From: Macrostomum hystrix
Taxonomy: Eukaryota; Animalia; Platyhelminthes
DNA: 64,000 nucleotides
Reading direction: 5' to 3'
NCBI GenBank assembly: GCA_950097015.1
Contig: CATNEN010000005.1
Location: 4,278,001 to 4,342,000 of the forward strand
Shown piece after piece: positions 998 to 33,139 of the stretch; the first letter of the stretch is position 1; each line of letters begins with the position of its first letter. The notes beneath the pieces are model-generated. The model made no database searches and had not been told where the DNA came from. It saw only the letters and a list, made by a program, of their open reading frames with translations. Both the position numbers and the translations under genes were made by a program.

Positions 998-3442
998 TCA
1001 GCGTGCATCAGCCACAATCTCCTGATACAATGTGACCTCACTTACAGGTCGCGAGTTCGAGCACCCAGCTCCATTCGCAGCATCAGCGCCACCATTTCGT
1101 TTGTCCTTTGGCATCATGGACAGGTAGGTACAGCTGATGCCGTCCTGAAATTAGAATTTCAACCTGAATCAGCAGAGAGTTCTTTGGAACAGAGTAAAGT
1201 ACTGCAACGAAAACTCGGCTTACATCACTGTTCGCATCTGTGACATTGTCAGAAGGAATCGGCTCTGGAGATGCTGCCGACAGCTGCTGCAATGGCACTG
1301 CCTCTTCGGATAACTCTGGCTTCACTGACTTTGCTGGAGGTGTCATTGGTGCGGCCCTCTGAAAGTTTAAAAAAATTGTGAGCTGAAGATTCAGAAGAGC
1401 TTTTATACTAGTTATTTAGAGTACCCAGATTAGGACAATCCTACCTTTCTTCGCCAAAAACATATGATGAGAACTGACAAGATGAGGGTGCAAGCAATGC
1501 TCAGTCCAAGGAAATTAATATAAATCGATCTTTTATACTCGTTGCCTTCTACAAATTTCGAACGGTGACTTACGAGTACATGTGCGTGGCTAGTGAGTGA
1601 AGCAAATCTGTACCTTTTGTTTTTGAGGAGTTCACACTCGCGTTCTCATAGATTTCAAAGTGTGAACTCGGAAAAGAAATCGTCTTAATCACACTAGACG
1701 GCAGCCAGGAAACATTCGCTTGAGCTGCAGTGCATTTCAGTGTGACAAGCGTTCCGTTTTCCCCTTGACAGCAGTTGAGGCACTTCCAGTGTGATGTCAA
1801 GGAGTCAAGGGTGGAGCTGATGAAGCTCTTATTCCATGCCTCACTCGACACTGTCAAGTTGTTCCCGAAGCTATCGAATGCACTGCACTGATGCTCTGAT
1901 TTTGGGTCTGAGCTGGAAGATAAGAAGCTGAATGTCACGTGACCTGACGGCTCTTCGCTGCAGCTCGAGTTGTCAACCGTGATTTCCAGTGTCTCTGGTG
2001 GATCTGAAAGTTAAAATGATCGAAGCTTTAAATAAACTGATAAAATATTCTTCATTATTGATCTGAGCAGCTGTACTCACACAGCACTCGCAGGTATTGA
2101 GTGCTCGCGACTTCATCTCCAACACGACAGCTGTAATTCCCAGCATGTGATGGCTGCAGGTTATGAATAAAGTGAGTCCGGTTTTTACTTCCGAGGGTCA
2201 TGTTAACACTTGGACCTGTCAGCCTGATGTGGTCTGAGAAATCAGCTGGACATCGCACATTGCACTGCACGGTAACACTCGAGTTCTGCTCTGCTGAATC
2301 GGGGAACTTCCCGCTTGATGACTGGAACTCGGCTGCAAGTTCAGATCCACGAAGTATTGTTGCTCGATGAGTAATATTTTCCGAATTTATATATACGGTA
2401 TTATTCAGTTCGGAGTAACAAACTTACTTGTCAGAACTGCTCGATTGATCCACATGTTGACAAAGTTCATGCATTGTCTTACTATGATCGTTTCATTGGT
2501 TATATATTTCCTAAGAAGAACGATTCGCACCTGAAATTTTTTAACATTTCAAAATTTAGCCTAAAGGTGACTAATGTAGGCAAATTAAAAGCATAAATGC
2601 TTTAGAAAATATTTTTGCATTCTCTTCAAATTGAAAGCAAATACGCCGTTGCTAGCTGATGTTGCAAGTAATGGTGGACAATGGTGGACATATTTTCATT
2701 ACTTTTAGTTACAGGACTTCAATGCCTCCACAATTACCTTTTGTCTTGTGCAGTTCACAGTCAGAGTCTGTCCTGATGAAACGTTGGTTGGCGTCCTTCC
2801 GCACAGCCTCCAGGTTCCGTTTTCCGCCTTCTGAAACACGGAGTTGATGTTTTTCGAGTTGCAGTGCTCCGAGCCAAAGTTCAGGTCGGCCTGCGATGTC
2901 CACACCTCAATGTCTGCTGCTCGAGCGTTCAAATTGTCTCCGTAGCTCGTATGTTCATTTTTAACTAATGCTAACAAAATTAGGAGAAATTAGGATTTTG
3001 AATGACAGGATTTAAAATAGCAACTAGAAAATCACTGGTCAGAATTAAGTGCTCACTTCTTGCTTTCATGGACACAGAGCTGATGTTCTCAAACTGCTTC
3101 AGTTTTATCACAAACCAATGAAACCCGGCATCAGTGCTTTCGTTGCCCTCCATGGAGTGAAGAAATGGCCAGTTGCCAACTTCATCAGCTGAGCGACTCG
3201 AGAAGCAAGTAGATATACTATTTTCTTGAATAAAGCTGGACGACTGCCACGATTCTTTTATAAGACTTCTTCGGACTTCAAGTTTGCCTGAAGGTCGTTG
3301 TGAAACATGTCATGGTTTTAGCGTTTACAGAAGCTGAACACGCATTTTGGTTTTCTAACTCACAGTTATCCGCGACACATGGACGCAAAACGATGAATCC
3401 GCAGACAGCTAGGCCGATGCAAAAAACTACTCGACTGTCCAT
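998..3442 (-). CDS. Receptor R1: signal peptide + F-lectin/discoidin-like domain + Ig domain + Cys-rich domain + TM + tyrosine-motif tail (about 565 aa, 9 exons)
   Basis: Hand-spliced exons 3442-3364, 3287-3057, 2964-2738, 2530-2428, 2362-2081, 2003-1614, 1548-1445, 1358-1224, 1144-998, all GT-AG with consistent phases. Signal peptide MDSRVVFCIGLAVCGFIVLRPCVA. Motifs WQSSSF, FLHS, GFHWFVIKL, RAADIEVW, FGSEHC. Ig: VTVQC...LQPSHAGNYSC. TM: FLGLSIACTLILSVLIICFW-RRK. Tail: CTYLSM and VTLYQEIVADAR-stop. Confidence 0.85.
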
Positions 3443-5007
3443 GCTAACAATGTAAAACTTATTAACTAGCTCGCAAAATTCACAGTGATGAGTCTTCTAG
3501 GGGACTTGCACTGCTATGGGACAAGTCGCGTAAATTAGCAGAAGTATATTAATATTTATTTTTTTATGAACTCAATTAATAATAATGAAGATGCAAGTTA
3601 AAATCGCAAGTTGCCTAATATACTTGTAGGACAGAATACAAGAGTCCACTTAGCAACAGAACTCTTGCTTCCAATGCTGCAGTACGAACTACGAGAATAT
3701 ATCTGCAGGCTTAGCTTGCTGGTTTACAAGCTATTTTTGATGGAGAGTTGTAAAATTTGATTCAGATTCGTCCAAACAAACCCTACTATTATACTAAACA
3801 TCTTTCTAAATTTGCAACGAAATTAGCAGTTTAGGTTACTTTAACTTTAGCATTTGATTGACTTGTCTACGTCAAACGAAGTGCAACTTCCTGTTACCAT
3901 TGTTGTAGGGCTATCTTGTCTTGTCGATTACACAAAATTTTAACTATTCTAAGAATCTGGTTTTCATAATTTCGGAGTATTTTAGGTCATAAAATTTAAC
4001 AAAGTATCTTAATATATTTATTCGGCTACTGCGTAGCTTCGGACGGTCCACACTCCGGACTAGAAGGTGTTTCGAGATAGTTAAGGTAGCCGGCCCGGCT
4101 ATCTTACTTAAGGTACTTAAGTAAGTCTTTCTATGTGTTTTTAGAAAACTATACGTCCAACTTAATAAAATAGTCAGGAAACTATCAATATTGAAATCAC
4201 GCTTAGTATAGTAAGATCAGAAAAGAATTATTGACACAGCCTCAGGAAAGAATCAATGATCAGATGTATAGAAACATATTTAAGATAGAAAGAAAGAAAG
4301 TAAACCTAGCCCAGTTGCGCCAGAGGTGCAACCAGCAGCAACGTCACGAGATGCTAATTCTCGAGCTTGTGTACAGCAGCTGTCCGTGGACTAGCAAGGC
4401 ACCACAACTCAACCAAGTTTTTAGTACAATTTTACACTTTGGTTTGAGATTCGAGGCCCCAACCTACAAGTAAAAAAATTCGAAGCTCTACCCAAAGAAG
4501 CTCCCTGTAGTGCAAAGCAATCTGTAAGCCTTGCAAATACGCTTAAGAACATTGTATTTGCATGGCTCACATGCTTCGCGTACACGACGAGGCGTCCGTG
4601 GATCGATACGGCCCAGGAATGGGAGGAAGAAGTTCGGCGAGCGTTCGCTGGGGAGCGTGTGCGTGTGGGACAAAGAAACAGCTGCCCCTGTGTCAGCAAT
4701 CTCCCAGCGTTTCTCCCTCTCTCCCCATTCTGTCTCTGTTGTGCGCGCTGCTTGAATTTAAATACACTGGAAGCGAGAGGCAGAGCTACGCTGCCGCTTT
4801 TCATGTGACTCCGGAGTCCACACAGAAACGGGCCTCTGGCCCGTGGAGCGTTTATCTCTCTGTTGCTGTGGCAGAAGGTAACAGGAAGCCAAAACTTTCC
4901 TGTTATACAATCCATCTAGTTTAAATGTAGCTTTTACGAAGTCAAGCTTTAGCTGAAACGAAGCTATTTGAAGAATACGAGGCAGGCAGCTCGTATTAGG
5001 CAGCTTT

Positions 5008-6508
5008 TCAGTTATTTCGGCAAATCTGGCTCATGTAGATACTGCGAGGCAAAGTTCTCGACTTTCCGAAATTATTTCGCTCTTGCTGTCGTTTAGATTT
5101 GTCGTGTTCAATTTCTCCGGTGTTGTTCCACGATTTCTGACGATGGGACTCAGAGAGTTTTATATGTGAGGAATCAGGGACAACTAAAACCCTCGGGACG
5201 CGAAACGAGCCAATTCATGGCAAAAAATCTGAGGGGCTCGCTTACAAGTATTGTTCTATGGCTTTTTCGAGTCTTCTCTGCTATCAAGCAAATTAAAATT
5301 GCTTTAGCTGCGGCCAGCAGTGAAGCTAAGCTGAACTATATCAAGAGAAGCATTTTTTTTCACTTGATGAAATGCCAAGAAATTGCAGCGCTTTTCCGTG
5401 CTCGTCAAATTACAACTCTGAAGCCGTTCGAACACGGATATTTGCGTTTCCCAGAGATCCACAGGAGCGGGAGCGATGTAGAAAGGCGCTGCCAAATATT
5501 CTCCAGGTAAGAAACCAGATCATTTGCTGTCATTACTGCTGCATAATTCCGCTTCAATTCTGCACGCCAGTCTCGTCCAAACAACTTGAAACCCAAAATT
5601 TATTATTTTAGAGAGTGACTGACAATATGGGCGTGTGCGTAAAGCATTAGACTTATCCTGTCTACAGCAGTTTTATTCTGCACTCTCCTACGTGCGCAAC
5701 TCGCGTGCAGAAGCTGTTTTATGTTATTAAGGACTTTTACTTTCCAACTAAGACACAGTTCAGCATGGACAGTGTGTCCCGTCAAATAGCCAACGTTTTT
5801 TTCAAAGGACTAGTAAGACGCTCGTCAAAACTCCCACCAATACCGACGACATCCCATGATAGATAGCTTCGGAAGTTAGATGCTCAGTAGGTGAAGTTCC
5901 AGCGTTTCCTTTATGTACGAGCTACTGACTGTTTGTCAGCTCACTTGTCACACTTGTAACTCTGACAAGTGCTCTATGAAACGGGGCCCTGATAGCAGAG
6001 AAGACTTGAAAAAGCCTTAGAACAATACTTTTAAGCGAGCCCCTCAGATTTTTTGCTATGAATTGGCTCGTTTCGCGTCCCGAGGGTTTTAGTTGTCCCT
6101 GTGAGGAATATTTGTCTTTGTCTTAATTCCAACGCAGACTTTATTTACCTTGCATAATACAAGAATGAGCGCAGCCATAGTGCTCAGAATCGTTCCCAAA
6201 ATGGCAGATGAAGCTGCGTACAGAAAGAAAGACAGAAAATATTTACTAGACATGTTATTTAAGGAGGATAATCCCAATTAGAACAAAATTGGTACCTTCC
6301 CAAACGCCCCGTGGTTGAAGGCAATTAACAGTTTCAATTGTTCCAGCATAAATGTGCCTATTCGTGATACCGCACCGACTCCAAAGATTTCTGCGTTTTA
6401 AAGCAGCTGCGTTTTAAGTTTTAAAGCAGGACAGATTCACAGAATTCGAGGAGTAGCTGGATGACTGCCAAGAGTCGGCGATACTCAATTTCGAAATATT
6501 CAGCGCAC
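5008..6508 (-). pseudogene. Degenerate receptor paralog R6 (lectin exon with premature stop, TM exon, tail exon)
   Basis: Exon 6508-6296 is 213 bp, the same length as exon 2 of R3 and R5. It reads CALNISKLSIADSWQSSSY with an in-frame TAA at 6414-6416. TM exon 6213-6149 (ASSAILGTILSTMAALILVLCK, GT donor). Tail exon 5148-5008. The intervening intron shrinks to 65 bp once the 5175-6101 element and one TSD are removed. No ATG-led signal exon found. Confidence 0.55.
5175..6101 (+). mobile_element. Non-autonomous DNA transposon with about 110-bp TIRs, 8-bp TSD and a THAP-domain remnant (P/Galileo-like or hAT-like)
   Basis: TIRs begin CAGGGACAACTAAAACCCTCGGGACGCGAAACGAGCC at both ends. Perfect TSD TGAGGAAT at 5167-5174 and 6102-6109. 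Internal ORF 5372+ MPRNCSAFPCSSNY...IFAFPRDPQERERC matches the THAP N-terminal pattern, with the conserved Trp replaced by Cys. Confidence 0.85.
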
Positions 6509-9016
6509 CTAAAAATGTTTTACATGGGCGCGCCTGTGAATATTCATAGCTTTGTGACGCTCTCGGTGTGGACCCAGGTGGTGAAATAAATAACGACAAA
6601 CACCGCGAAGATGTGTGTAGCGGTAGCACTCAGACAATGACGGTAACAGTAAGCGATGACAAATATTATTATTGGCGACGTTTGCGGGTATAGGTATACA
6701 GACAAGCTCGTGGCGTTATTAGCGTGGGTAACAGAAGAATAAGGTTGAATCCTTTCTTGCACTGTGGTGGGCAACAATTATAAAGTGAGGATAAAAGAGG
6801 CTGGGATACCGGTGGCTACGGCCGGTAACAGGACAGCACTCCCTGACCCCAGTGGAACACTTAAGCGGAAGCGGAAGACGGCGGAAGGAGAGCTAAAAAC
6901 GGAGGGCGATGGCGGAAGGAAGGAAGGAAGGTGGCCCTCGAGCTCCCAGCCAGACAGATACATAAGGAACGGGCTGGGGGTTGGCGCACAAACAGAAGCT
7001 TAATTTTGACCCGGCATAATTTATGCCTCGCCTTACAATTAGCTCGCGCAAAAATGCTAACTATAACAAGAAATCATCGATCGCAGAGTACATAGAGCTT
7101 CCGGTCGCACCGCACAAATTGAGATGGTTTCGTACTCTAACGTTTGCTTAAAGTAGCCAATCAGACATTTTAACAATTGGTGGAAATGAATATTAAATTG
7201 ACAAAATTCCAACATGGGTTAAAATGGCCCTAGTTAGATCCACATTCAATGAAACGTCACAGCTTTTCCAAAAGACTGACCATAATTTCTTAGGATTACT
7301 TACAGTTGCTTATTAAGAGATAAAATTTGCGATTAGCGATAAATAGCGATACATTTATAGCGATAAATAACTCATTATCGCTTATTCGCCTGGATAAAAG
7401 CCTCAAAAAGCACAATTATTCGATAGATTAGCAGACTGTTCCCTTGAGTTCGAAGCAGATATATTCCTTAACAGCTGAAAATATGGTGCCAGTGGTGATG
7501 CCTGTAATACACAATGGCTGTAGCTACCCACTGCTATTAACAGCTAGTCTTATTATACGTTTTCTAGCAAATTTTCACCGAACTGTTTCCTTTGAGTCCA
7601 ATTGTATACATTGCTAGTCTCTTGAAACTAAATGACAACAATAAACCTGAATTCTATTTTGAAATAATGTTCAAGTGCTATAATACAAACGGAATAGCTA
7701 TAATTATGACAATTTGTTTTGTACATCGTTGATTATCTCATTCATGTACAAAATTACTATTCAGTTTCAAATTTTCACTCACGAAATTGCTTAAAAAACT
7801 ATAAAAACTCTGATTCTTTCGTTTTTATTTCTTGGCTGATTAAATTATGGCATCAAAATTAAAGTGACATTTTCATTATAATGTACAAAGGTGCCCCTTT
7901 CACCCTGGCGTCGCTGCATCTGTTTCAGCCACCCTGATACAGTGATACTATGAACAAGCTCCAAGCAGGGTTGCACAGCTATGCAACCCCTCAGTGGCAC
8001 CCGCTGATGATTGGTAGCTGGTTTGTGCTCCGATTGGCCAACGTCCAAATAAATTTTGAGTACAATTACACTCAAATGGATCCAGCTTGGACACATCAAA
8101 TTCAATGGACTAATATGATTATTATTTAGAGCTGATTCTCATCGACTTTGAGAGACGTTTGGTAGATAAGAAATAAACAAATAAGCAAAGCGGGTGAGTT
8201 TAGTCGAAAAAAGTGTTTGTTGTCTAAACAAAGCTTTATTAATTAATGTTAACGGAAATATTTTCTCTCGTGAAAAATTATAATTTTTAATTCTATATTT
8301 TGTATTTTTGTTAATGTGTGATACCATGATATAATAGTTTTCGATGTATTTATAATCAAGCAAATTTATTTTATTTAAGCGATAGCGACCGAGCTAAATT
8401 TGTTTTACGCAGTTGCATCGCAACGAGCAACAAATTATTTTGTGCAGGAGTATGCACGATAAACAATTGACTGTAAATAATGAAAGCTTTTCCAAACATC
8501 AATAACGAATCATGCAGGCTACACCATATCAACCATGTACAAAATACCAAGTATCAAAATGACGGGAATATTATTTGCAAGAGGGCTTCGTTGGCACTGG
8601 CACATACTATGACATACTAGCACATACAATTTGTTGACAGTAGACCGACAGCCGGCGACAGGGAAAGACAAGCTCCGAAGACTTACGAGTATGTGAATGT
8701 GACTTTGCCGCGAAATCATGGACTTTGGTTCAAGAAGCAACGGATTAGCCTCTGTAACCACACACCCCACCCAAAATAGGATGCCAGTTAGTATTCGCAT
8801 AAAATTTGAAATATTAGATAGAAGGATAAATTATGTAAATTTAAGAACGAAAATGTAAATTCTTTGACTATACTGTGTTAAAGTGGGATTTAGAAAGTAA
8901 ATTTCCAGTTATTTATTCAATACGAAGCTATTTTAAAACTGAACTGCCATGCAGTGTCGCGTTGGATACAAGCGATTCAGGGATACAAACATGACTTAAT
9001 TGCGCAGATCGTCCGT

Positions 9017-11106
9017 TTACTCGAGAGACCCTGCAGCTAGTTCGGATGAAGCTTGTTCTGTCGGCGAGTAGCGTAACCGGCGCTTATTCTGAAATTTACA
9101 AACACATTTAGTTACTTTGCGTAACAGGCAGACTTAGAAGGTTTGGAACTACTGTAGTTGTCTTGCCTTTATCATTGTTATTGTAGCAAAGGCTACTGAG
9201 ATGATAGCTACGGCAGCGAGAATAAGAACTGTGCTTGCCAGCGCAATGGCATGCGATTTATTAGGATACTCTGCAAATTCAAGGGACAATTATCGCGTTG
9301 TTTAGAAAAGAAAGTTTAATAAAAAAGTCTTGAAAAAAAAAACTTTACCATAGAAACAAAATTCGCGATTTAGATGCAGACTTTTAACAATGGACACACT
9401 CCAAAGTTCATGGTCATTTAGACCAGAAGAAGCTGCAGTGCAATTAACGGTTAGGTTGGCTACAGCGCCACAGGTTTTGCATGACCAAAAAGAACGGATT
9501 GAGCTCTGTTTTGAGTCACTTAAGCTGTATTCTTTTCGAATAAGTTCAAGCCCTAAATCAATTGCTCTACAAAAGTGCGTCGGTTCTGGTTCTGCCGCAG
9601 ACGACTCGAAAGCCAGCGTTGGTGACCGTCCGGCGCACAGGTTCATTTGATAATCGATTTTCAATTCGGCAGGCGGAGCTGAAAAAAAATAGTAATATTA
9701 CTTACCGCAGAAGGGCTGTTGGTACTTGAATGGACATTGTCAACTTACATTCAATAACGAGACTTCTGGTGCTGACAGCAACGTCGTCATCAATTCTGCA
9801 AGTGTACTCACCGGCATGCGACTCATTCACATGATTAATCACGTAAACTTGATTAGCGGTTGCTAGTGTCTGATTCCTACTAGGCCGAGTTAGTTTGATT
9901 CGTGACTTATCGATGTTTAAGCATTTCGAAGCGCATCTCAGAGTCACCGTTTCATTCTTTCTGATGATCGATCTGGGTTCGATTTCCACTGGTAAAATGG
10001 TTTGAAAAAAACACATTTAGTTGAGTTAAAGTTACATTTTTACGATGTGTTGTTTTACCCGCCAAGAAATGCTTTGACCAATGCGATGCATTACTTACCA
10101 GATAGTGACACATTCCACAGCATGTCACGAAAGCTCATGTAATGGTCCAGTTTATTCGCTCCTTCGGTAATTGACTTTCGAAAAGCAACCATCTGGGTAT
10201 AGTGTTTCGAATGTATTTTTTTATGTTTGTCTATGCGATGCAAATCATAGTTTAACACAAACCTAATGGCTACATTGTGCATAACTGATTTTGATTCTCT
10301 ACAGCATTCACTTTAAACATGCTATTCCCATCAGCTTATTTGGTGGCTAAATATCACTTGGCTGTCAGACGCGTCCCTTTGTTTGTTATATTGTTAAGTA
10401 ATTAACTTAGCTTCAGATGCTAAACTCACCTTTGTTAAGCCTCCACAATCGACAAAGAACCATCCGCTGTTTCTGTTGCCAGTTTTTCCACAAAATCTCC
10501 ACTTGTACTTGTCACCATCAAATATAGAGCTAATAGTTTTTGACTCGCAAGAATTCGAGCCAAAGTCAACATTCGATTGCGTAATCCAAATTTCGATGTT
10601 CTGCGCATGGCTTGTGTAACTAATATTATCGACCTCTGAGAACAAGGTTTAGACCGATCTGTTTAGCTACAGGCAGTAAATGAATGCAAGTTCAAAGAAG
10701 GCCAGACTTACCTCCATGCGTGATGTACAGCCTGTTTAACCAAATAGTACTTGGGATAAGCATAATCAGCCAGTGATAGCCGTTGTCTGCAGCAGCAAGC
10801 CCAAAGCCTGAGTGGAAATAGAATTGAGTCTCGGGGTTGCCAAGTCCGCAGTACTTTTCACCTGATGAGCTCCTGAAGCTTGACGACTGCCATGTTCTAG
10901 TCAAATTTGATCTCAAAATAGACTTTAAGCCTGAATGAAACGAAGTTAATTTGAGAAAAACCATTTTAACATTTTTCACTGGCGTCTACTCGTAATAAAA
11001 TAGTGAGAAAAATTTACGACTTACATTGCGAAGCATTCGCTTGATGCACACAATGGGTAATAATGGTGAATAAAAGAAGTGCATGCTTTGCTGTTACAAA
11101 AACCAT
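9017..11106 (-). CDS. Receptor R2: signal peptide + lectin-like + Ig + Cys-rich + TM + short basic tail (about 448 aa, 8 exons)
   Basis: Exons 11106-11025, 10930-10712, 10635-10430, 10192-10099, 9988-9749, 9678-9349, 9270-9167, 9088-9017, with consistent phases. Motifs WQSSSF, YFHS, DNGYHWLIM, FGSNSC. Ig: VTLRC...VNESHAGEYTC. The TM exon is 104 bp, as in R1 and R5, and needs a GC donor (AAG/GCAAGA). The last exon is less certain. Confidence 0.8.
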
Positions 11107-12374
11107 AGCGGCTCTGACTGGAAAGAAATTCCTTTTGAAATGAAAGAAAAGCCTTTGAACAGAATGACAGAAATAAATTGTGCAAATCGCTTTTAAATTT
11201 CTAAGCCTTTTAAAGACCTTCCAAATTGTCGCGTGGCACATTATCAATGTAGCACAATGCAAGTGGTGAAATAAACAGTTAAGCATTGAGGCGGTGTTTA
11301 CACTGAGGATAGTCCGGCGCGAAAATTTCTGTCAGAAGATGTAGGCAGAAAATTATATTGGCGAGACTTACTATTACTTCCTTTGCTATGTTTGAATACA
11401 TTATTGTCACTTGTTGATAGAAGTGACAATTTATAAAATTTGACTAAAGTCTGGAACCAGCATAGGCCTGTCGCTTTGTTGCTTTTGCATTGACTAAATA
11501 TCCTAGTCGGATTATGCTTTTAAAATTAAGTTTCGAACTGTTTGGTTTCCTGTTACAAAAGAAAATTTCATTTCCAGGAAGCAAGATTATTTATACCGCA
11601 AAATTCTGCGTTTGTGTCGTGCGCTGAAATAAAATTTTGTATGTATAAATGAATGATCGCGCCGATTAGTAACAGTAGAAAGATCTACGGTTTATATCAA
11701 ATAAAGATTTTTCTGTATCTACAAAAATATTCAGCTAATCGCCTTGAAAACTCGCTTAAACTTATAAACAGGCTAAAATTTTCCGCTCAATCCGATTAAA
11801 CAACTTCCACTTTAAACAATTCGGTTTGGGAGCCATCGTGAAGTATTTGAAATACCCCAGGTCTTTCCCCAGGGGGAAAATAGTGTGGTCTTTGTACTGC
11901 TAAAATAATTTTATTTAAAGCTGGCTTTATATAATTTAATGAACAAAAAAATCAGCAGCTGCTCCAGAAGCTAAGTCTTCGCAATAAGTACAACCTTCCA
12001 GCGATTCGCTTAATTTTAGGACTTCAGACAGCCCCGGGCCAAATGAGACGGCCCCATGGCCAGCCCCCATACTCAGTGACACCATTCTGCGGAAGGTGCA
12101 GCTTCAGCAATTTCGACAGGGAGTATGTTTTTCTTCTTTCGTGAACCCTTTCAGTCACAGAATCAAACAACCTTATTGCTTCGAGGTAGCCAAGTTTGAG
12201 GCTCAACTAGGCCTCTTTTGGGAATACGAAAGAAATGTTTTTCGACTTCTTAATAAGGTAGGCAATCGCTCGTCCTTGCGACTGTAGTGTCGGCATGTTT
12301 ATTTTATAATGCGTATAGTTCTTTTTGAAGTAACTTATTCGCACACGTCAATATTAATGAATTATTAAAATGTA

Positions 12375-16721: not shown

Positions 16722-16970
16722 ACCCGACAGCACAGCCGCAGCTATTGCGCATCTGAGGCAGCATACAGCTGTCCAGTCCATGGACTGGTGGGACGCCACA
16801 CCCACCCTCAATTAACGCGGCTGATGCTGGTGCCCATTTAACAGCTGGGTTAACTGAAGAAATGCCGAGTTTAATTGTTCTTGCTGAATGACAAAAGTAT
16901 TTCCACTGGAGTCGGGAATCGAACCCCCGACCTTCAAGTCGTGGTTAAGAATCTCTAGCGACTAGGCTAC
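16722..16970 (-). mobile_element. tRNA-derived SINE, family A copy 1
   Basis: Minus strand begins with A-box-like TAGCCTAGTCG and B-box-like GGTTCGATTCC. The body GTCCCACCAGTCCATGGAC is shared with the copies at 18.9, 32.9 and 51.4 kb. Confidence 0.8.
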
Positions 16971-17258: not shown

Positions 17259-20200
17259 ATGGAACCAAGCGTATTTCATTTTTGGACTAAACTTCTATTG
17301 ACGCTGCTGCTCTCGCAACACGCAGCAGCGGATTTGACAACTGAATGTGAGATTATTCGATTGTCTTGTACTATTATTATTATTATTATTATTACTATTA
17401 TTATTATTATTATTATTACTACTATTATTATTATTATTATTATTACTATTATTATTATTATTATTATTACTACTATTATTATTATTATTATAAGCCAACA
17501 GGGCCAAAAGCAGCAAGAGGGAAGACAAGGCGTGCCGACAAAGGCAGCGGACGAACGAGTCCTGCGATAGCGAATATATTTTAGGATTTGGGGCGTCACG
17601 AAGGAAGGAATAACAACGGAATAAAAGCAATACAGAAAAAAAATTTTACGAGCCAGAGCGCTCACGCAGCACGCACTTTGAGCGTGAGCGCACAAATAAA
17701 AGCGGGGCCGACGCCGCCATCCCCCAACCAAACCACCCCACCTGCCGGCCGGCACCCAGCACCCCAACTTGCGGCAGGGATGCACACGCGCGAGCCGCAC
17801 GCACAGACAGGCGGAGGGTCGGCCCAGTCGGCTTAACACGATTACAGAGCCAGTTAAAACCCACCCCGAAATCGCAACCTTATTATTATTACTATCGTTA
17901 TTATTAATATTGTTATTATTATTGTTATTATTACTTTGTGCACGCCGATTGCGTGATAAAAAATAGCAGAAGCATATATATAATTTAGTGTGAAAATAGA
18001 GCAATTTGTTAAAAAGTTTAAATAAAAACAAAAAAAAAGATAATATGAACTTCGTTCTCTACTTCGACTCAACACGTTGGTCATGTTCTATTTTCATAGG
18101 CGTCTTACAGTTCTCTATGTTTGGCAGGCAAGTTTGTGCTTTTCCAGACGAAAGCGGGACATTATGGGACATAATTTGTTAAACAATAACTGCAGGAGGT
18201 CTGTGTGGGCAATGGCACATCATTAGGTGACACTAGACCCGCAGCCAGCGGGGAGGCAATTCTGTCCATTCCGCTGACTCCTGAGCACACACGCATTCAG
18301 ATACTGTACTCAGGCACACGCTCGCTCATTTCTCATCGCCAGGCAGTGTACACTCTCACTGTGCCTTGGAGGTTGGCCCTCAGGGGCGTAAATTGCACGA
18401 CAAGCTCCCAAGCCTTCTTTCCGCGGTTGCACCCAAAATGAATGTGAAATCGCCGCGGAATCGAGATTAAACACAGTGGTGCGAGAGGCAAACGCGTTGA
18501 CCGCTCCGCCACTGATCCCCATTCTAGATTAATATAGAAAATTAACAATTATTATTAGGTTTTTAGAGGCCGAATTAAATAGCTCGTATTTTAACTTTCA
18601 GACATTACAAAGCTTACATACGATCTGTTGTCTATGGTTTGGCGGTCTTCCAGCTTTGTTTTATCTGATGGCAGCCTGGAATGCTCGGTTGCGAAGGCCG
18701 GATCAGTTGTGGCTTTCAAATCGGCAGTTGGGCTGTCTTACGCTGACAATGAGTACCACTGGTTTGTTATGCAGCTCGTCAGGCCCATTTCGCTTCGTGA
18801 GGCACTCATCACAGGTAAGAAGACAATCTTGTGGTTTCGTTAAATGCCAATTTGTGCCATGATAATGAAATAATGCTTACACCTGAACCGAATGGGGTCA
18901 GAGATGCAGCCGACAGCACAGCCGCAGCTTTTGCGCAGTGCATCTGAAGGCTGCGTACGGCTGCTCTGTCCATGGACTGGTGGGACGCCACAGCCACCTT
19001 CAATTACCCCAGCTAATGCTGGTACCCCTTTATAACTAACTGCAAGGCGAGTTGAAGTAATGCAGAGTTTGCCTTGCTAAAGGATAAAAAACTATTTCCA
19101 GTGGAGTCTAGAATCGACTCTCGACCTTCAAGTCGTGAGTCCGAAGCTCTAAACCACTAGGCTATAACCCGTTAGTAGCCTACGGGGGTACAATCGGCAC
19201 AATATGACCTAGTTTTGCGTCCATTGTTACGCAAAACTGGTATCGTTAGTATCGTGTCTGTATGGAGTTCCATTTCACTTTTTGACAACGAAGTCGCATG
19301 GTTAAGCGCAATAAACAGAGTCACCTCCTGGCTGGGGTTCATTCGCCAACCAGACGCACCAAAGCACAAATCCGATAGGGCACTTGAATTGTTGTTGTGT
19401 CAATAAATATTTATCGCAGCAGTATTTTACACAGGAACGAATATTATTTCTAGTTATAATTGAGTGACTTGCAGGACTGCAGACAATGGCTCATTATTTG
19501 GTTAAACAAGACTTGCAGGCAGCGTCAATTCTGCCCATTTTGCTGACTCCTGAGAACACGCTCACACGGGTGTGTAAATCTGCCCTGACTTTCTAACTGT
19601 CAGGCAAAGTACACTCACTGTGCCCTTGAGGTCGGCCGTTAAGGGTGTAAATCGCACGACAAGCCACAAAGCCTTCTCTCCGCGGCCTTCTCTCCTATTT
19701 AGTTCATGGTCATGCCGCGGATTTGAGCTCAGGGACAAATCCCTGAACGCGTAAACCGCTATTCCAACGGTAAGTCCTGATATAAAAAAACTACCGATAA
19801 TCTTTCCGGCAAAGTGTTAAAGGCAGTTAACAGGCAAATAGTAATGCCTGCCTGGAGAATTTCTGGACAAACTTCTTCCGTTGTAGGTGTGCAGGCGTTG
19901 CCAGCCTATTGGATTAAAGGAATCGAACTATGGACCGCACCAGTGGCTGTGAATTTCGGCCCCGAACACTGCAACTCGTCCAGTATTAGGTCTAGGTTCA
20001 TCGCCACAAGGAACCAATGGAGCTTTTGTGCTTCGACGAGCACCTGGGACGATGGAGTCGGAACTGCTAGGTTTCGCTGCATTAAAACTCAGAAGGTACG
20101 GCTCAACAAAAAATATATTAACATCTTTTACCTCATTAATTTGTTATACTAAACCAGTGTCAGTTCAAATTGCAATTTATTGTGTTTCTAGACTCAAACC

Positions 20201-20903
20201 ATATTGCTCAGAAAGTATCTAGCTCACATTGGCGAGGATCGCCGATGCATGGGATTTGAAGCCATTCATTTGGTTAGAGTTTTAGCTAAGCGTAAGTGGC
20301 TCATGAGAATTTAATGCCAGTATTTGTTAACATCATTGCTTTTACTCGTAATTTTCAAATTTCTGACAATTTCAGCACCAGAGCCAGACAGCAACCAGCC
20401 ATTATACTCGAAATCCAGGAGCTGGGTATATGGCATTGTTACCTTCGCTGCGTTGATATTAGCTACTGCCTCTGTTATTACCGCTTGCGTAGCAGTGAAT
20501 AGAAAGGTAAGAATAGAAAGGTACAATATCACTTCATTCAGTGACAGTAGACCCGGCAGTTAGAGGCCCTTAAGTGTAATCCCAAAATTAGTGTAGTTTC
20601 CTTAAATTAGCATCGAGCTCAGGAGCGAGAGGTAAATTCGTAAGACAGATTTTCCATTCACCAAAGTTGAATCTTATTAAACAGGTGCAAAAATAAACGT
20701 ATAAGGTCGCTCTTGGGGACATCAAATTTAGCGAAATGTGTTTTTCCTCAAATCCACAAATCCCACAGAAAAAAACTTGCCCCATGAAGAAGGAAGAATT
20801 TCAAGAATCTCCCTGGTGGGAATCTGAGTTGCAGCCAAGCAGACAACACACCAGAGCGCCTCCGAAATTATTTGAGGACGAAGCTTATTATTCGATCGCT
20901 TAA
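17259..20903 (+). CDS. Receptor R3 (opposite strand): signal peptide + lectin-like domain + TM + tail, no Ig or Cys-rich exon (about 291 aa, 6 exons)
   Basis: Exons 17259-17346, 18602-18814, 19887-20095, 20192-20291, 20376-20506, 20769-20903, all GT-AG with consistent phases. Motifs WRSSSF, DNEYHWFVMQL, IELW...FGPEHC, LLRKY...CMGF. TM: WVYGIVTFAALILATASVITACVAV-NRK. Tail ends EDEAYYSIA-stop. Confidence 0.8.
17370..17935. repeat. (ATT)n microsatellite split by a GC-rich insert of about 390 bp (17493-17880)
   Basis: ATT/ACT triplet runs at 17370-17492 and 17881-17935 flank a GC-rich unique segment in intron 1 of R3. Confidence 0.8.
18189..18513 (-). mobile_element. tRNA-headed SINE, family B copy 1
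   Basis: Reverse complement matches the copies at 22.4, 23.1 and 26.3 kb (head AGTGGC-GAGCGGTCAACGCGTTTGCCTCTCGCACC; body GGGCCAACCTCCAAGGCACAG and CTCAGGAGTCAGCGGAATGGACAGAATTGCCTCC). Confidence 0.8.
18905..19165 (-). mobile_element. tRNA-derived SINE, family A copy 2
   Basis: Head TAGCCTAGTGGTTTAGAGC...GAGTCGATTCTAGACTCCACTGGAAA and the shared family A body. Confidence 0.8.
19512..19768 (-). mobile_element. SINE family B copy 2 (diverged)
   Basis: Contains the reverse complement of CTCAGGAGTCAGCAAAATGGGCAGAATTG and AGAAAGTCAGGGCAGAT. Confidence 0.7.
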
Positions 20904-22430: not shown

Positions 22431-22696
22431 GAGCGGTGCCAAAGCGGTAACGCGTTTTCTTCTCGCGACAAGGTCCCATAGTTCGATTCCGCAGCGAGGC
22501 CACATTTATTTGGGGCGCAGCCGCGGCGAGAAGGCTTGGGGCTTGTCTGGCAGTGGCAGTATACACTGCCAGATGATCAGAAATTCAGGGCAGATGTAGA
22601 CACCTGTCTGAGTGTGTGCATGAGTGCTAAGGAGTCAGCGGAATGGACAGAATTGCCTCCTCGATGGCTGCATTGTCCACAGCCTTCCTGCAATTA
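22431..22696 (+). mobile_element. SINE family B copy 3
   Basis: Head GCGGTAACGCG...GTTCGATTCCGC, shared body, tail CCTGCAATTATT. Confidence 0.8.
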
Positions 22697-23081
22697 TTGT
22701 AATATTTTTAGCGCTTCAGAACAAGATCAATGGTTAAAATAGTAGCATAGTATTTACGGTCAAATAAAAAGACTGAAAGCATATATATATTTATTTTTCG
22801 CATGGACTGCACGATGGCTAAGGGTTTGAATGATGCATTATTATTTTGAACACGAGCTGAATAATTTAGTGCATTACATGGGTACGTTCGTAGATTGTCA
22901 TACACATTAAAAAAATATATTTTTGCATATTTCTAGGAAAAAGCTGTCTTCATACTTTCAACTTCCGCCGCATGTATAAACAAAACGGGATTGGAGCGGC
23001 TGGGTGTGGGGTAAGTGACGTACAATTCCTGCAAGCGATTGATGGTTTGTGACTGTGTAGCCGGAAAGCACTGGTAGGCTT

Positions 23082-23368
23082 TTGATTCTGCAGCGAGGCC
23101 ACATTTATTTGGGGCGCAGCCGCGGAGAGAAAGCTTGGGTGCAATTTACGTCATAGAGGGCCAACCTCCAAGGCTAAGTGGCAGTGTACACTGCCTGATG
23201 ATGAGAAAGTCAGGGCAGATGTACACACCTGTCTGAGTTCTTGACTGCGTACAGTGCTTGTGCTTGTGGGCTCAGGAGTCAGCGAAATGGGCAGAATGGC
23301 CTCCTCGCTGGCTGCGGGTCTAGTGTCACCATGTCTGATGTGCCATTGCCCGCAGACATCCTGCAATT
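23082..23368 (+). mobile_element. SINE family B copy 4 (5' truncated)
   Basis: Shared body CCAACCTCCAAGGC...GAGAAAGTCAGGGCAGATGTACAC...CTCAGGAGTCAGC and tail CCTGCAATTA. Confidence 0.8.
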
Positions 23369-23791
23369 AATTTAACTATTATTGCACCGTTCGACTATGA
23401 TAAAGGCTGGGCAGTTGTACATGCACGCGCTTAATATATTGCTTTATCGACAATATGATCACTCCATAGAAGTTTAATTTAAATCATGAAAAATGAAGAC
23501 GCCAGTGATAATAAAAGTGAAAAAAGTATCAGTTTTGTCACACTCGAGTCTTTTATAAGCCATGAGGTTATTTTGCCGATCCGTCAGAAATAATCTCAAG
23601 ATATACTGTGAGCTCGCTGTTTGTTTGACTGCTGATGGATGGTTCGTACTTGACGTGCTGTATCACCGTGTCGTAGCAACACTCGCTGTTGTTCGGATTC
23701 TGAAAGTACAGCAATCAACAAGCAATATTTGTTACGTTACATTTTTGTGTCCTTTAGCTAGACACAGCTACATAGCTCGTATATTGCATCT

Positions 23792-25553
23792 TCAATAATA
23801 CAAATTTGTATATACTGGAAGCCTTTCATCTTTGAGTACTTTACTCACCAGAAAATTTGAAGAGCTCCCGTCAATATCCTGTAGGGATTGCTGAGAGTGC
23901 GACAAAGCTTGGGTGCGGATGTCTGGTGGCAGCCAAGGCTTCTGCGGCACCTCTCTATTCAGGACAGTCAGTTGATGGCCAGAATTGGATTCTTCCGTAG
24001 ATCTCTGTAAGCAGATTTTCTGCAGATTTATTAATGGTCGAGTTTGATTAAAAGAAAACGTTATGAAAAAATGATATTGAATATTGATATTTTTGCTTGC
24101 TTGCCTTTCTGCCAAACATCAAGAGACTTGCTGCGAGTACAATAATCACTAAGGCAGCGATGCAAATCGAAGCCAGCACCAATGCTGAAAAAATGAGTTG
24201 CTATGGTAAGTGATGCACAAATTTAGGTAAAATTAAGAACAAACTTAACAACTGAGACTATCTTTAGTTGGAAGTGATTGCTTACAAAAGCCAGTGCTTT
24301 TAGGGCAGCTTCTGTCAACAAAAATAGATTTCTCGATCTTGTAACTAGTTCCGCCATTCACTGTGCATTTGACTGTCATGTTAAGAAAACGGCTGCAGTT
24401 TTCACATAGCCACGAAGATCTCAGCAAGTTTCTATGGAGGTCGCAGGTTGGTCTGTTCTTAATTAGCAACTGAACATTTTCGCCGTTTAAATCGTAGGCT
24501 GTGCAAGCGTGTTCTGAAGTATCTGGTGATTCGAAGAAAAATGTAATATCGTCACTGGGTTGACGTCGGTTGCAAATCCCTTTTTCAGCTTTGATTGTTA
24601 ATTGACTTGTCGAGTCTGCAATAAAATAAATATTTTCATCAAAAAAGCAACCAGGAGACAAGCAGTGTGCATGATATTAACAAACGGAATAAAAAGTCGC
24701 GTACCTGTTATATCAATTTGATTCAACCAAATGTCCACAAAATTCATACACCTATCCGTTTCTTTACTGTTGCCTGCAGTAACATTCTTTCTTAGCAACA
24801 ACATACGAACCTAGAAGAAATGTATCTTTGATAACAGATTATCATTTTAATGTAGACCGATAAATTATAAGAAGTTTTACGCACCTCTTGATCACATTTG
24901 ACCGTCAAGTACCTTTCTTCAATCTTAGAAAACTGAGTTTTTCCACAGTAGTGCCACATTTTTGGGTTATACTGTGAACTTACACTAGCTGAGCAGTGTT
25001 CGGATCCAAAGTTTTGATACAGTTTTGATGAGAACACTTCGATATCGGCTGCTCGATATTGAACGTTGGATTCTGGAAGGTAATTGTCGATAACACCTAC
25101 CTAATCGGGCCAGATGTCGTTCCACCTGTTGTTCTTATTAGTGTAATAACGTAACAAAAAACTCACCAGATCTACTTTTGACTGTCACAGACTTGATTTT
25201 TTCAGTCTTATTAAGTGCTATGATAAACCAGTGGTAACCCTTATCAGCAAATTTATTATTAGTTTCAGAATGGAAAAATTTAAAACTGTTGACATTGTTG
25301 GCTGAATGCGCTTTAAAGCAGGTTTCTTTTTTAGTGTGTGCTAAATACTGCGATGTCTGCCATGAGTCTGCTATATAGTTTGATGTGACGTTTAATCCAC
25401 CTGCAAGGCGCGAAGTTAATTTTTTACTGGTTCAATAAAATATTTTTTGGTCATAAAGCGTTTCAACTCACATTTTCCTTTTTTAAGCTCGCTCAAAATG
25501 GCGCTTCGACATGTGGCAAGCAATGTGCAGAAGATAATTCCAAAGATTTGCAT
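23792..25553 (-). CDS. Receptor R4: signal peptide + lectin-like + Cys-rich + TM + tail, no Ig exon (about 415 aa, 7 exons)
   Basis: Exons 25553-25472, 25400-25167, 25072-24885, 24810-24705, 24615-24286, 24184-24105, 24019-23792. Motifs WQTSQY, FFHS, DKGYHWFII, RAADIEVF, FGSEHC, LLLRK...CMNFVDIW. TM: LVLASICIAALVIIVLAASLLMF-GRK with a GC donor. The tail end (VYTNLYY-stop) may be spliced differently. Confidence 0.78.
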
Positions 25554-26049: not shown

Positions 26050-27045
26050 AAATTAAAAGTCACCTGGAAGGGTGCCTGCCGCGTGAACAACAGGAATCCT
26101 GTTGAGACGTCTCGGGACAAGGACCCAGTTGTCGAGGCTGTAAAGCAGGACGGTGTCGACCAAAGCCTGAAACAAACGCCGCCCGCAGTCTATCAGTTCG
26201 GGCCTCATACTGCAGGACTATCGGACTCAATAGAGTTCTCGTTGCGGAAGGCTGCCCAGGCAAGCCCGCCGCCACGCCGTAGATATTTGCGAACGTCGGG
26301 CAACGGACTGCTGTGGTAGATAAGCTGCTGGCAACGTACAGTTACGGGGTGAGTGGCAGAGCGGTTGACGCGTTTGCCTCTCGCACCAAGGTCCCTGAGC
26401 TCGATTCCGCGGCATGGCTACATTCATTTGGGGCGCAGCTGCGGAGAAGAAGGCTTGGGTGCAATTTAAACCCATGAGGGCCAACCTCCAAGGCACAGTG
26501 AAAGTGTACACTGCCTGACATTGAGAAAGTCAGGGCAGATGTACACAACTGTGTGAGCGTGTGCCTGCGTACAGTGTGCGTGTATGCTCAGGAGTCTGCG
26601 AAATGCGCAGAATTGCCTCCTCGCAGGCTTGTGGGACCAAAATGATGTGCCGTTGCCTGCAGCACTCCTGCAATTATTACGATATTATTATTAATAAAGT
26701 ACAGTTCCCATCCGAGCCTTAGTTCTGGATCGCGACTCGGATTCCACCGGCGGTAGTGTATTGACCACCAAGCCGACACTCGCTGACAGGTTATCTAGTT
26801 CGAAAGTTGAGAATAAGCAGGGCGATGTCGTCCGCGTAGCCAAGAACGCCAGCAGCCACATTCTTTTAGCCTGACCCCCTCACGTCGCCGCAGCATAATA
26901 CCTTTGTCGTCAGACGGTACAGCACTCCGTTGCAACCGAGTCGAGCACCAAGATAAATAAGAACGGCGCCAGCGTGTCCTCCTGAAACACTCCGGAGAAT
27001 GTTTCGAAGGGTTCGTCCAATATTCCCTCCAAATAGGTATAAGCA
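26050..27045 (-). mobile_element. Degenerate non-LTR retrotransposon (RTE-like) reverse transcriptase fragment, interrupted by a SINE
   Basis: Frameshifted motifs GVFQEDTLAPFLFILVLD, LGYADDIALL (YADD at 26827-26838), GLAWAAF and RLFQALVDTVLLYSLDNW, in the correct order on the minus strand. SINE B5 sits at 26348-26695. Confidence 0.8.
26348..26695 (+). mobile_element. SINE family B copy 5 (near full length, ATT-rich tail)
   Basis: Head GAGTGGCAGAGCGGTTGACGCG...CTCGATTCCGC, full shared body, tail CCTGCAATTATTACGATATTATTATT. Confidence 0.85.
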
Positions 27046-27501: not shown

Positions 27502-27693
27502 CATTAAAAGTCCAATTTTCGATTTGGAGACTGTTTTCAACTAATTCAGTGAAAGCAATAGGCTGAAACTAATTTGTCTATTTTAGGTATCTGTCCGATT
27601 GATTTCAAGCTGTTTCGAAATCTGCCAGAAGTGAAAACGACTATCACTGGTTAGCAGTGCAACTGAAGACAGCAACATGGATAATATACCATT
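27502..27693 (+). pseudogene. Degenerate receptor lectin exon fragment R7
   Basis: One frame with several stops reads ...YFRYLSD*FQAVSKSARSENDYHWLAVQLKTATWI, matching the DNGYHWL/DNEYHWF motif of R2 and R3. It is preceded by a plausible acceptor (TTTTAAG at 27501). Confidence 0.55.
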
Positions 27694-27953: not shown

Positions 27954-28484
27954 ATGATCAACTACGACGGAATAGTGGAAGGCGAGATTGTAGGCTTGTC
28001 CACTGATGAATTGCGCTTCGTCACTGATGAATCGGTCAACCGCTCCGGAGATACTGCGATATCTCAATTCACCGGACTCGTGACTCTCGACGCAAGCTTC
28101 GTCGAGCAGTTTATGCTGGGATTGTCAGATTATCCGGAGTTAAGCGAGAGCGACGTACAAGAGATTTCGAAATTGGAGAATGATTGCGCTGTGCGATCTA
28201 CCGAGAAGCAGACCAGGATCTACTCTGAGAAGGTGAAGGCCTTTCTAGCTGAGCGAGGTTTGTCAACTGACCTCGAGAGCATGCCGCCAAGATACGTGTG
28301 TCACTATCTCCGTTTGTTTTTCTCTACTCTCAAGAAGCCCGATGGCACTGCTTACAGTTGTAGCACACTTGTGTGCATAAGGGCTGCAATTCATCGTTTC
28401 CTACTGGAAAAGCGAGGTATGCCGCTCATTGGAAATCCGGATTTTTTTGAGCTGGATAAAACCTTCAAAGCTGCCGTAACGTGA
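27954..28484 (+). mobile_element. Crypton-like tyrosine recombinase N-terminal fragment (QRICH1/KCTD1/ZMYM DUF3504-associated family), truncated
   Basis: The 176-aa ORF contains YLRLFFSTLKKPDGTAYSCSTLVCIRAAIHRFL...LIGNPDF, the LxxFxxxxRKxDGxxYxxxSLxxIRxAIxRxL pattern that precedes the Crypton catalytic domain. It stops before any catalytic motifs. Confidence 0.65.
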
Positions 28485-29459: not shown

Positions 29460-31155
29460 TCAATTAGAGCCATTAGCACCATTACCATCAGCGACAATTT
29501 CTGTATAGAGGGTCCACTCACTCGGTGGTCGCTCCGAATCCAGACTGAGATCACTTTGAGCTGACTTAACAACTTCGTAGCTGCATTCAGCCTGCTGACT
29601 GAGACTTGGATTATAATTTGAATCGCTCAATTGCAGGCAAACCTGAGGCTTAACACTCTGGACTTCAAGTTCGTTGAGCTCCTGAGGAGTTGAAAAACTT
29701 TCTGCTCCTTCGTAAAATTGGCTTGCAGTGTTCTGAAAACCATTTATACATTGTCCTCTCGAGCGCTGAAATGTTTAGACTAATGCTTCGTTTTACTTTG
29801 TCAAAGTTTGTCTATAAAACTTAGAAAATAGAGATTTTACCAGCTTGAAAGTGCAGATGCCGACAGCAACAGCACAAGCAACAGCAGTGAGTATGAGCAG
29901 CATTGGTAAAATTGCTGTTGCACTAAACACAGACTTTTTAGAGGCTTAAATGTTTATAAAATAAACGACTTTACATAAAAATCTTAAATAAGAAATTTAA
30001 AGTTCAAGGACAACAAATGCGAATCTTACGACAAATCAGAGAATTAAAAAATGTTCGATTTGTTACATCATGTGACGCCGTACACGATAATGTCAATGAT
30101 GAATATGTGCCGCTGCAATTTAAGCAAAACCAAACCGACTTCAGTACATTTGCCACTGGATCACAGGTCAGGTCGTCAATCGTATTTTGTTTAAACAAAT
30201 TCATCCGGTAGCCATTCTCGTCTGTGGCGTAGCACTCGTGCTGGGGTGCAGGATTTGAGTCCGAAGATTCGAAACCGAATGTCAGATTAGAAGCTTGCTG
30301 ATCTACGCAGATATTCTCATCAACAGATATTTTCAGCTTTTGCGTCGGATCTGAAATTTATGAATCGTGTTTAAAATTATTTGTTTCCTTATATTATCAT
30401 GTTTTGATAGCATATAGCTTTGCTACTCACTCGATACACTGACAGTGCTAATCCACATGTTGACGAAGCTCATACACTGCTTACGCTCATCGCTAACATT
30501 GCTGACGTTCTTTCTAAGCAGAATCATTGTACTCACGACCGGCTAAGTTAATAGTTATTTGGCTATTCATTAATGACTCAAATTGTAGATCATTGAGCTC
30601 TAAGAGGGCAATCTTTTACCTTTACCTGGTGGCAGTTGACAATCAGTGTTTCGTTGGACTTCACTGTCGGCTTAGTCCTGCCGCACATGCTCCAATTGCT
30701 CATGGTTTCGTAAAACTTTTTGCTAATTGCTGTTGAGTTGCAGTGCTCCGAACCGAATTCATAGTCGTTTTGCGTAGTCCATATTTCAATGTCAGCTGCT
30801 CGACTGTTAAGTACGTCCGTCAGATTATCCTTTTTTTCGTATTCTGAAACATCTAAAAAAATCATGAGAGTTTTTATCATGAAAATTGAAAATATACTTA
30901 AAAGTACTTTAGATCGGAAAAATTGGCATGTTTAATAATTACCTCTATTTTTTATCGATACAGATGCAACTACTTGACTCTGGTTTAACTTGATCACTAA
31001 CCAATGATGTCCATCGTCTAGATATGTACTCCCTTCACCCGAATGGAAGTATCTGTATGTATTTTTCTGACCAAAAGAAGAATTGAAGCAATAGTGAAAA
31101 CGAGTTGACGACTGCCAAGAATGCTTAAACGAGCGGTTGTCGATGCTCAGGCTAC
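29460..31155 (-). CDS. Receptor R5: lectin-like + Cys-rich + TM + tail with ITSM-like motif (first exon unresolved)
   Basis: Exons 31155-30943, 30852-30620, 30542-30431, 30350-30030, 29944-29841 (104 bp TM), 29765-29460, with consistent phases. Motifs WQSST, YFHS, DDGHHWLVIKL, KNRD, RAADIEIW, FGSEHC, ILLRK...CMSFVNMW. Tail has SYEVV and RPPSEWTLYTEIVADG. Confidence 0.78.
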
Positions 31156-33110: not shown

Positions 33111-33139
33111 AAGACCACTTAGCTACTTCAGTAGTACTT

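Follow-up and report, generated by a model that had tools for sequence, protein, structure and literature searches.

We analyzed a stretch of 64,000 nucleotides of animal DNA (~40% GC) from the flatworm Macrostomum hystrix (contig CATNEN010000005.1, positions 4,278,001 to 4,342,000; here referred to as the window) and found at 998-31855 a tandem array of paralogs that encode type-I membrane glycoproteins. This cluster comprises five paralogs, named R1 to R5, and two decayed remnants. The proteins have an N-terminal head of ~180 amino acids, which is encoded by three exons and predicted to form a jelly-roll of the F-type-lectin/galactose-binding-domain fold, and a single transmembrane (TM) helix. 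R1, R2, R4, and R5 also contain domains with an immunoglobulin (Ig) fold, and R1, R4, and R5 carry conserved tyrosine motifs in their cytoplasmic tails. The family is real and has so far been seen only in Macrostomum; most likely it falls outside the known receptor families, and its most likely role is in innate immune or other cell-surface recognition. An original prediction, made from the window sequence, had described the locus as a cluster of lectin-Ig receptor genes with tyrosine signaling motifs and as a candidate polymorphic immune or allorecognition locus. The lectin-fold head, the Ig domains, the TM helix, the tyrosine motifs, and the uncharacterized nature of the family stood up to analysis, whereas the polymorphic recognition function was not supported.

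Gene inventory and exon structure of the cluster

The copies were inventoried by (i) a six-frame motif scan of the window for the anchors WQSS, FHS, G/N/E-YHW, A-A/Q-D/N-IE-I/V-W, FG-S/P-E/N-H/S-C, and LLRK, (ii) a comparison of a family head profile with all stop-free segments, and (iii) tblastn searches with family proteins. In the motif scan the anchors were confined to ~1-31.2 kb, each on the strand of the proposed gene, and the diagnostic anchors occurred zero times in the other 32 kb of the window. The head profile matched three head exons per copy in five copies with E values of 1e-6 to 1e-27, and tblastn recovered the identical five copies. The predicted set of five multi-exon genes was thus confirmed, and the two decayed copies were detected with the head profile. 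Two details required correction: the anchors are degenerate in R2 (VAFRK..YMSF for LLRK..CMxF) and in R3 (WRSSS, FKS, IELW, and FGPEHC), and the cluster begins at 998 as stated but extends beyond 31155, since the signal-peptide exon of R5 is located at 31768-31855. The copies are as follows.

998-3442, minus strand: R1 gene; profile matches on head exons with E values of 1e-11 to 1e-26; nine predicted exons at 3364-3442, 3057-3287, 2738-2970, 2428-2530, 2081-2332, 1614-2003, 1445-1548, 1224-1358, and 998-1144
6258-6629, minus strand: decayed copy 1; head profile E values of 0.0018 and 0.014, order and strand correct; head exon 2 is represented by its WQSSS-type start (6417-6629) and head exon 3, which comes next, by its CG..VNC end (6258-6413), with the middle gone
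8389-11106, minus strand: R2 gene; spliced RNA contigs; eight RNA-verified coding exons at 11025-11106, 10712-10930, 10430-10635, 10099-10192, 9749-9988, 9349-9678, 9167-9270, and 9017-9088
18602-20563, plus strand (the sole plus-strand copy among the five): R3; head-exon profile E values of 3e-17, 3e-16, and 3e-6; four predicted exons at 18602-18814, 19887-20095, 20192-20291, and 20376-20563
23568-25553, minus strand: R4 gene; open frame; eight predicted exons at 25472-25553, 25167-25400, 24885-25096, 24705-24810, 24286-24615, 24105-24184, 23849-23890, and 23568-23699
27603-27692, plus strand: decayed copy 2; isolated piece of head exon 2 (ENDYHWLAVQL), head profile E value of 4e-4
29460-31855, minus strand: R5 gene; profile matches with E values of 8e-10 to 1e-24; seven predicted exons at 31768-31855, 30943-31155, 30626-30852, 30431-30542, 30030-30350, 29841-29944, and 29460-29765

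The exon structure is anchored by R2. Contigs from four runs (X2 to X5) aligned to 5450-11400 and skip introns, which marks them as RNA-derived. They contain a joint for each of the seven R2 introns, with CT..AC on the plus strand (GT-AG on the minus strand) except for the last, CT..GC, which corresponds to GC-AG; there were zero base differences between the window and the contigs. The resulting protein of 448 amino acids, with its ATG at 11106, its stop codon at 9017-9019, and a 3' untranslated region (UTR) that extends to ~8389, consists of a signal peptide, the head, an Ig domain, an IgC-like domain, a TM helix, and a tail of 24 amino acids. The intron phases of R2 (1,1,0,1,1,1,0) were used to build the models of the other copies and are common to them.

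R1 is predicted to encode a protein of 557 amino acids with a signal peptide, the lectin-fold head, an Ig domain, an IgC-like domain, a TM helix, and a 96-residue tail; its frame is open through all exons, its introns are of the GT-AG type and 65-207 nt long, and the RNA-derived run X2 contains a fraction of 0.25 of the sampled R1 words, the junctions being predicted. For R3, the predicted protein of at least 235 amino acids comprises the head, a TM helix, and a short tail; its junction phases match those of R2, a first exon was not found, and a signal peptide was not confirmed. The predicted proteins of R4 (405 amino acids) and R5 (456 amino acids, with a 103-residue tail) each consist of a signal peptide, the head, an IgC-like domain, a TM helix, and a tail, and R5 has an open frame and GT-AG introns, the first of which separates exons 1 and 2 by 612 nt. 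Overall, the introns of the R1, R3, R4, and R5 models measure 65-1072 nt and are GT-AG except for one in R4. This GC-AG intron (23891-24104, predicted) lies directly after the TM exon, at the same site as the GC-AG intron of R2 (9089-9166, seen in RNA), whereas R1 and R5 have GT there. The exon plan is also present in a distant 804-residue member of Macrostomum lignano, in which exon 1 encodes 26 and the head exons encode 76, 72, and 29 amino acids. A common exon plan with consistent splice phases, as originally proposed, was hence borne out, with all seven R2 junctions present in RNA, and so was the single TM helix, which is found in all five models. Signal peptides had been announced for R1 to R4; we identified them in R1, R2, and R4 but not in R3, and R5 also has a signal-peptide exon.

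Lectin-fold head, Ig-fold domains, and cytoplasmic tails

A structure was predicted for P0012, a relative of R4 from M. lignano whose sequence is full-length; the input alignment combined family members with exons of the window. The model has a mean predicted local distance difference test (pLDDT) score of 74, with values above 90 in the head and a disordered tail. Its structural neighbors and their scores are as follows.

Eel fucose-binding agglutinin (1k12): 12.8, over 142/158 residues
Striped-bass F-lectin (3cqo): 12.1
F-lectin domain of lectinolysin: 11.8-11.9
Pneumococcal fucose module: 11.3
CBM32 modules and the N-domain of galactose oxidase: 10.5-11.6

A search of the head profile against the PDB returned three matches, all of them F-type lectins, with weak E values of 0.013-0.16, and the language-model neighbors of the head were clusters of F5/8-type-C, fucolectin, and pentraxin-fusion domains. 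According to the model, the head is predicted to have the F-type jelly-roll fold. The best Pfam match, F5_F8_type_C in one M. lignano member, had an E value of 0.008 and 16.7 bits against a cutoff of 28.2.

F-type lectins are defined by the fucose motif HX24RXDX4(R/K), the basic triad His52/Arg79/Arg86, a Cys82-Cys83 disulfide, and the cation motif h2DGx (PMC5712786). Inspection of 29 family proteins for these features showed that (i) the fucose motif occurs in none of them (regular expression allowing 22-28 spacer residues), (ii) no head contains adjacent cysteines, and (iii) h2DGx is absent from the homologous site, DG being found only right before the [F/Y]HW anchor in some members. In a HMMER alignment to the eel lectin, itself a weak match, the arginines of K.R and RAADIE align with the sugar-binding Arg79 and Arg86, and the invariant histidine of FHS falls on His47, not on His52; both arginines are absent from R2 and R3. 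Because the fold fits but the defining sequence features fail, we refer to the head as an F-lectin-fold domain with a putative sugar specificity and not as a bona fide F-type lectin. The F-lectin-like head of the original prediction therefore holds for the fold, while sequence similarity stays below the Pfam threshold. From eel agglutinin AAA (1k12), striped bass FBP32 (3cqo), and the streptococcal lectinolysin/fucolectin modules, the Macrostomum head differs further in being joined to Ig domains and a tail with tyrosine motifs.

Exon 5 of R2 corresponds to the Pfam family Ig_2 (E value of 8.3e-7; 29.6 bits, above the cutoff of 27), and exon 5 of R1 matched the same family below the cutoff (3.6e-4; 21.1 bits). 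The membrane-proximal domain has an Ig beta-sandwich of the IgC type, and the domain encoded by exon 6 of R2 folds as IgC. Three architectures result: R1 and R2 consist of a signal peptide, the F-lectin-fold head, an Ig domain, an IgC-like domain, a TM helix, and a tail; R4 and R5 are built likewise minus the classical Ig exon, with the IgC-like domain kept; and R3 lacks Ig domains altogether. The designation as Ig receptors thus applies to R1 and R2 in full and to R4 and R5 through the IgC-like domain only, but not to R3.

The tails of R1, R4, and R5 (59-103 amino acids) cannot be aligned outside two blocks. Block 1, CxYxx[V/M], reads SCTYLSM in R1, ECCYDTV in R4, and ECSYEVV in R5. Block 2, T[V/L]YxEI[V/I][A/S]D, follows 24-33 residues later at the extreme C terminus and reads TLYQEI in R1, TVYLEI in R4, and TLYTEI in R5; its counterparts in M. 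lignano are TVYLEI (P0004), TEYLEI (P0012), and TEYTEI (P0009). The consensus of the immunoreceptor tyrosine-based switch motif (ITSM) is TxYxx[V/I], and block 2 fits it at the sequence level as a candidate ITSM. Vertebrate inhibitory receptors dock tandem-SH2 phosphatases through pairs formed by an ITSM and an immunoreceptor tyrosine-based inhibitory motif (ITIM), and the tyrosine spacing observed here is similar, so that by analogy the two blocks resemble such pairs. Block 1 does not conform to the ITIM consensus, [I/L/V/S]xYxx[I/V/L] (PMC9546547), because it has a cysteine at -2. The tail of R2 is RNA-verified and contiguous with the 3' UTR, and that of R3 is likewise short; neither R2 nor R3 has tyrosine signaling motifs in the tail or a charged residue in the TM helix. 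Tyrosine signaling motifs, which had been attributed to the family as a whole, are accordingly a property of R1, R4, and R5. Separately, an unannotated last exon that matches the TxYxEI block of P0012 is located downstream of the P0001 gene of M. lignano (L001:12051-12125, in NIVC01003065.1), and the annotated P0001 (BOX15_Mlig021334g1) appears to be missing its true last exon.

Distribution, function, and alternative readings

When 1.84 billion representative proteins were scored with a profile built from head exon 2, 11 matches had E values below 1e-3 (best, 1e-13); all 11 are uncharacterized proteins of M. lignano whose names were assigned automatically and are arbitrary. Word-indexed searches that used P0001 or the family alignment as query retrieved only 4-5 M. 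lignano proteins, and structure searches of AlphaFold clusters added one further M. lignano-type entry as the sole clear relative. In tblastn comparisons the best M. lignano relatives are 40-62% identical to the window copies; R4 is closest to P0012 (51% identity in the head, 45% in the IgC-like domain, and 62% in the last exon). A maximum-likelihood tree of the heads has branch lengths >1 and resolves no orthology between window copies and M. lignano proteins. One family gene each was found at three M. lignano loci, where the flanks covered 10 kb to either side of L001 and, on one side, less than that for L002 and L004. The M. lignano models P0006, P0007, and P0018 are chimeric, in that the tail/TM part of one member is fused to the head exons of another; they are probably read-through models of tandem neighbors and therefore suggest that the genes neighbor each other in M. 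lignano too. No publication on the family was found in the literature on Macrostomum lectins, immunoglobulins, or ITIMs and on F-type lectins in Platyhelminthes, which agrees with the original view of an uncharacterized family.

As to function, we propose lectin-headed receptors of the Ig superfamily (IgSF). The membrane-distal head would bind an extracellular ligand, most likely a glycan, the Ig domains would serve as a stalk, and in R1, R4, and R5 ligand engagement would be signaled through the two conserved tail tyrosines in CxYxx[V/M] and TxYxEI. We regard this scheme of a binding head and signaling tail tyrosines as an evenly balanced proposition. R2 and R3 have short, motif-less tails and are devoid of both head arginines, and they may therefore be nonsignaling, decoy, or partner-dependent variants. 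By analogy, the genus-restricted, expanded family most likely includes members that signal by an ITSM-type tail and would work like Siglec-type or other ITIM/ITSM receptors. With Siglecs, PD-1, SIRP-alpha, and PECAM-1 it shares a distal recognition head, an Ig stalk, one TM helix, and two tail tyrosines ~24-33 residues apart, the distal one in TxYxx[V/I]; with paired receptor families it shares the adjacency of long-tailed and tail-less paralogs. There is, however, no sequence homology to Siglecs and other ITIM/ITSM receptors, and the V-set Ig head of those proteins is replaced here by an N-terminal jelly-roll of lectin fold, the sialic acid-binding N-terminal V-set domain of Siglecs being absent. 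The Macrostomum proteins also differ in the cysteine at -2 of the proximal motif and in short-tailed members without a charged TM residue.

Identity among the window paralogs amounts to 28-51% in the head, 32-45% in the IgC-like domain, and 38% in the Ig exon. Their divergence is thus old and uniform and not focused on the head, and the original statement that the sequence between anchors differs almost completely was overstated. For an estimate of selection, the ratio of nonsynonymous to synonymous substitution rates (dN/dS) was determined for three syntenic copies of the 804-residue P0009 in the M. lignano assembly, using exact-match mapping of the coding sequence. The ratio was 0.15-0.21 overall; by region it was 0.21-0.31 (head), 0.08-0.19 (stalk), and 0-0.10 (TM helix and tail), on the basis of only 2-6 nonsynonymous changes per region. 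These copies are under purifying selection, and the head is the least constrained region. A seemingly hyperdivergent head in one M. lignano copy was rejected as an artifact of tblastn alignments that ran into introns; the annotated proteins differ at 4 head positions.

These data bear on the proposal of a polymorphic locus for self/non-self or mate/gamete recognition, at which head variants would be kept by balancing or diversifying selection, as in the Hydractinia Alr genes, the polymorphic TM clusters of Biomphalaria, and the oyster F-lectin bindin. Such a locus would account for a tandem array with gene birth and death, remnants included, for very divergent paralogs with no resolvable one-to-one orthology to M. 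lignano, for the confinement of the family to one genus, and for a dN/dS that is highest in the head among the three regions of the M. lignano copies. The Alr genes offer a close parallel: they too form clusters of divergent, lineage-restricted type-I receptors with Ig folds, pseudogenes, and ITAM/ITIM-type tyrosine motifs (ITAM, immunoreceptor tyrosine-based activation motif) in their tails (PMC9546547). Their ectodomains, however, combine V-set/I-set Ig domains and an Fn3-like fold without a lectin head, and Alr1 and Alr2 are hyperpolymorphic allodeterminants of a colonial host, whereas Macrostomum is not colonial and polymorphism of its cluster is hypothetical. Divergence that is spread uniformly over the head and Ig-like domains, dN/dS values well below 1 throughout (on small counts), and R2 sequences that are identical across the four RNA runs, which may stem from a single laboratory line, argue against polymorphic recognition and leave this part of the original prediction unsupported. 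Macrostomum is moreover solitary, and to our knowledge no tissue-fusion allorecognition is known in it. We therefore rate a polymorphic recognition locus as very unlikely. Somewhat less improbable, but still unlikely, is the related idea that the Macrostomum clusters are a flatworm counterpart of the vertebrate paired receptors (KIR, Siglec, and SIRP), in which inhibitory members with an ITSM would be neighbors of tail-less members whose binding sites are altered, and both would diversify under pressure from pathogens or mates.

More weight may be given to cell-adhesion or developmental receptors, either sensors of contact or matrix that resemble discoidin-domain receptors (DDRs) or Furrowed-like proteins of planar polarity and adhesion, with tail tyrosines for endocytosis (YxxPhi sorting) or adaptor binding instead of immune-type signaling. 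The pattern YxxV/I is also compatible with a tyrosine-based sorting signal, purifying selection in the M. lignano copies fits this alternative, and the structural neighbors of the whole model include DDRs and IgSF adhesion molecules. In Drosophila, CG9095 and furrowed combine F-lectin domains with a TM segment (PMC5712786). DDR1/2 and the Caenorhabditis elegans DDR-A, the top neighbors of the whole model among Swiss-Prot models, likewise have an N-terminal galactose-binding-like jelly-roll and a single pass, but TM-scores are below 0.3, and DDRs contain a kinase, have no Ig domain, and are conserved one-to-one across animals. An expanded, divergent family in one genus would be unusual for core developmental receptors, and a tyrosine pair of fixed spacing that ends in an exact C-terminal TxYxx[I] is more immunoreceptor-like; adhesion or development hence remains the less likely, although tangible, explanation. 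Finally, the copies other than R2 could be unexpressed or decaying pseudogenes whose exon plan is a relic, given that two clear remnants are present, that the anchors of R3 are degenerate and its first exon was not found, and that the RNA alignment covers R2 alone. R1, R4, and R5, however, have frames that stay open across 7-9 exons, canonical splice sites, and a tail block that is conserved between species, and a quarter of the R1 words are contained in X2; we rate this reading as highly improbable.

Little is known about the surface receptors by which free-living flatworms respond to microbes, glycans, or other cells, and we found no published description of an architecture that combines an F-lectin-fold head, an Ig-fold stalk, and an ITSM-type tail. 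If the tail recruits SH2 phosphatases, Platyhelminthes would provide a documented case of inhibitory signaling of the ITIM/ITSM type by a receptor with a lectin head; if the comparison with paired receptors is true, a polymorphic recognition system with lectin heads would have evolved independently in a flatworm that is amenable to genetics. RNA interference and transgenesis exist for M. lignano, and because this species also has relatives of the family (BOX15_Mlig021334g1, BOX15_Mlig012130g1, and the BOX15_Mlig034318 copies), the ligand, the signaling partner, and the role are directly testable.

Other features of the window

Several further elements are located between or beside the receptor genes. 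A 112-nt inverted repeat (5175-5286 and 5990-6101; 96% complementary, 703 nt apart) adjoins decayed copy 1 and possibly represents a foldback element; transcripts cover this region, with a joint on the opposite strand at 5450/5990 in the RNA contigs. Dispersed short repeats sit between and within receptor genes, including the 1072-nt intron of R3, and are probably SINE-like (short interspersed nuclear element) sequences, some of them with a tRNA-like GGTTCGATTCC-type box. Between R2 and R3 is an intronless open reading frame (ORF) of 441 amino acids that is rich in hydrophobic segments. It had no Pfam match and no homolog in a word-indexed search; its language-model neighbors are clusters of rhodopsin-type seven-transmembrane receptors (scores of 0.92-0.95), and it may encode an orphan G protein-coupled receptor. 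The Pfam domains of the dynein ORF listed below are AAA_8, MT stalk, AAA_9, D6, AAA_lid_11, and Dynein_C, with E values down to 3e-98. Large satellite arrays occupy 32467-34861 and 43225-50420.

14198-15523, minus strand: intronless 441-residue ORF
16756-16840, 18420-18519, 18948-19032, 22450-22529, 23049-23256, and 26368-26576: dispersed short repeats
27954-28484, plus strand: 176-residue ORF between R4 and R5, just downstream of decayed copy 2, with a weak match to a QRICH1 domain (E value of 0.015)
33189-34861: 18-mer array with ~94 repeats
44061-45965: 16-mer arrays
46342-46728: 34-mer array
47173-50420: purine-only 20/40-mer array of 3.2 kb with a GC skew of 1.0
57848-62983, minus strand: single 1711-residue ORF for the C-terminal half of a dynein heavy chain
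17372-17491: (TAT)40 microsatellite, which gives rise to long poly-Ile/Tyr/Asn pseudo-ORFs on both strands

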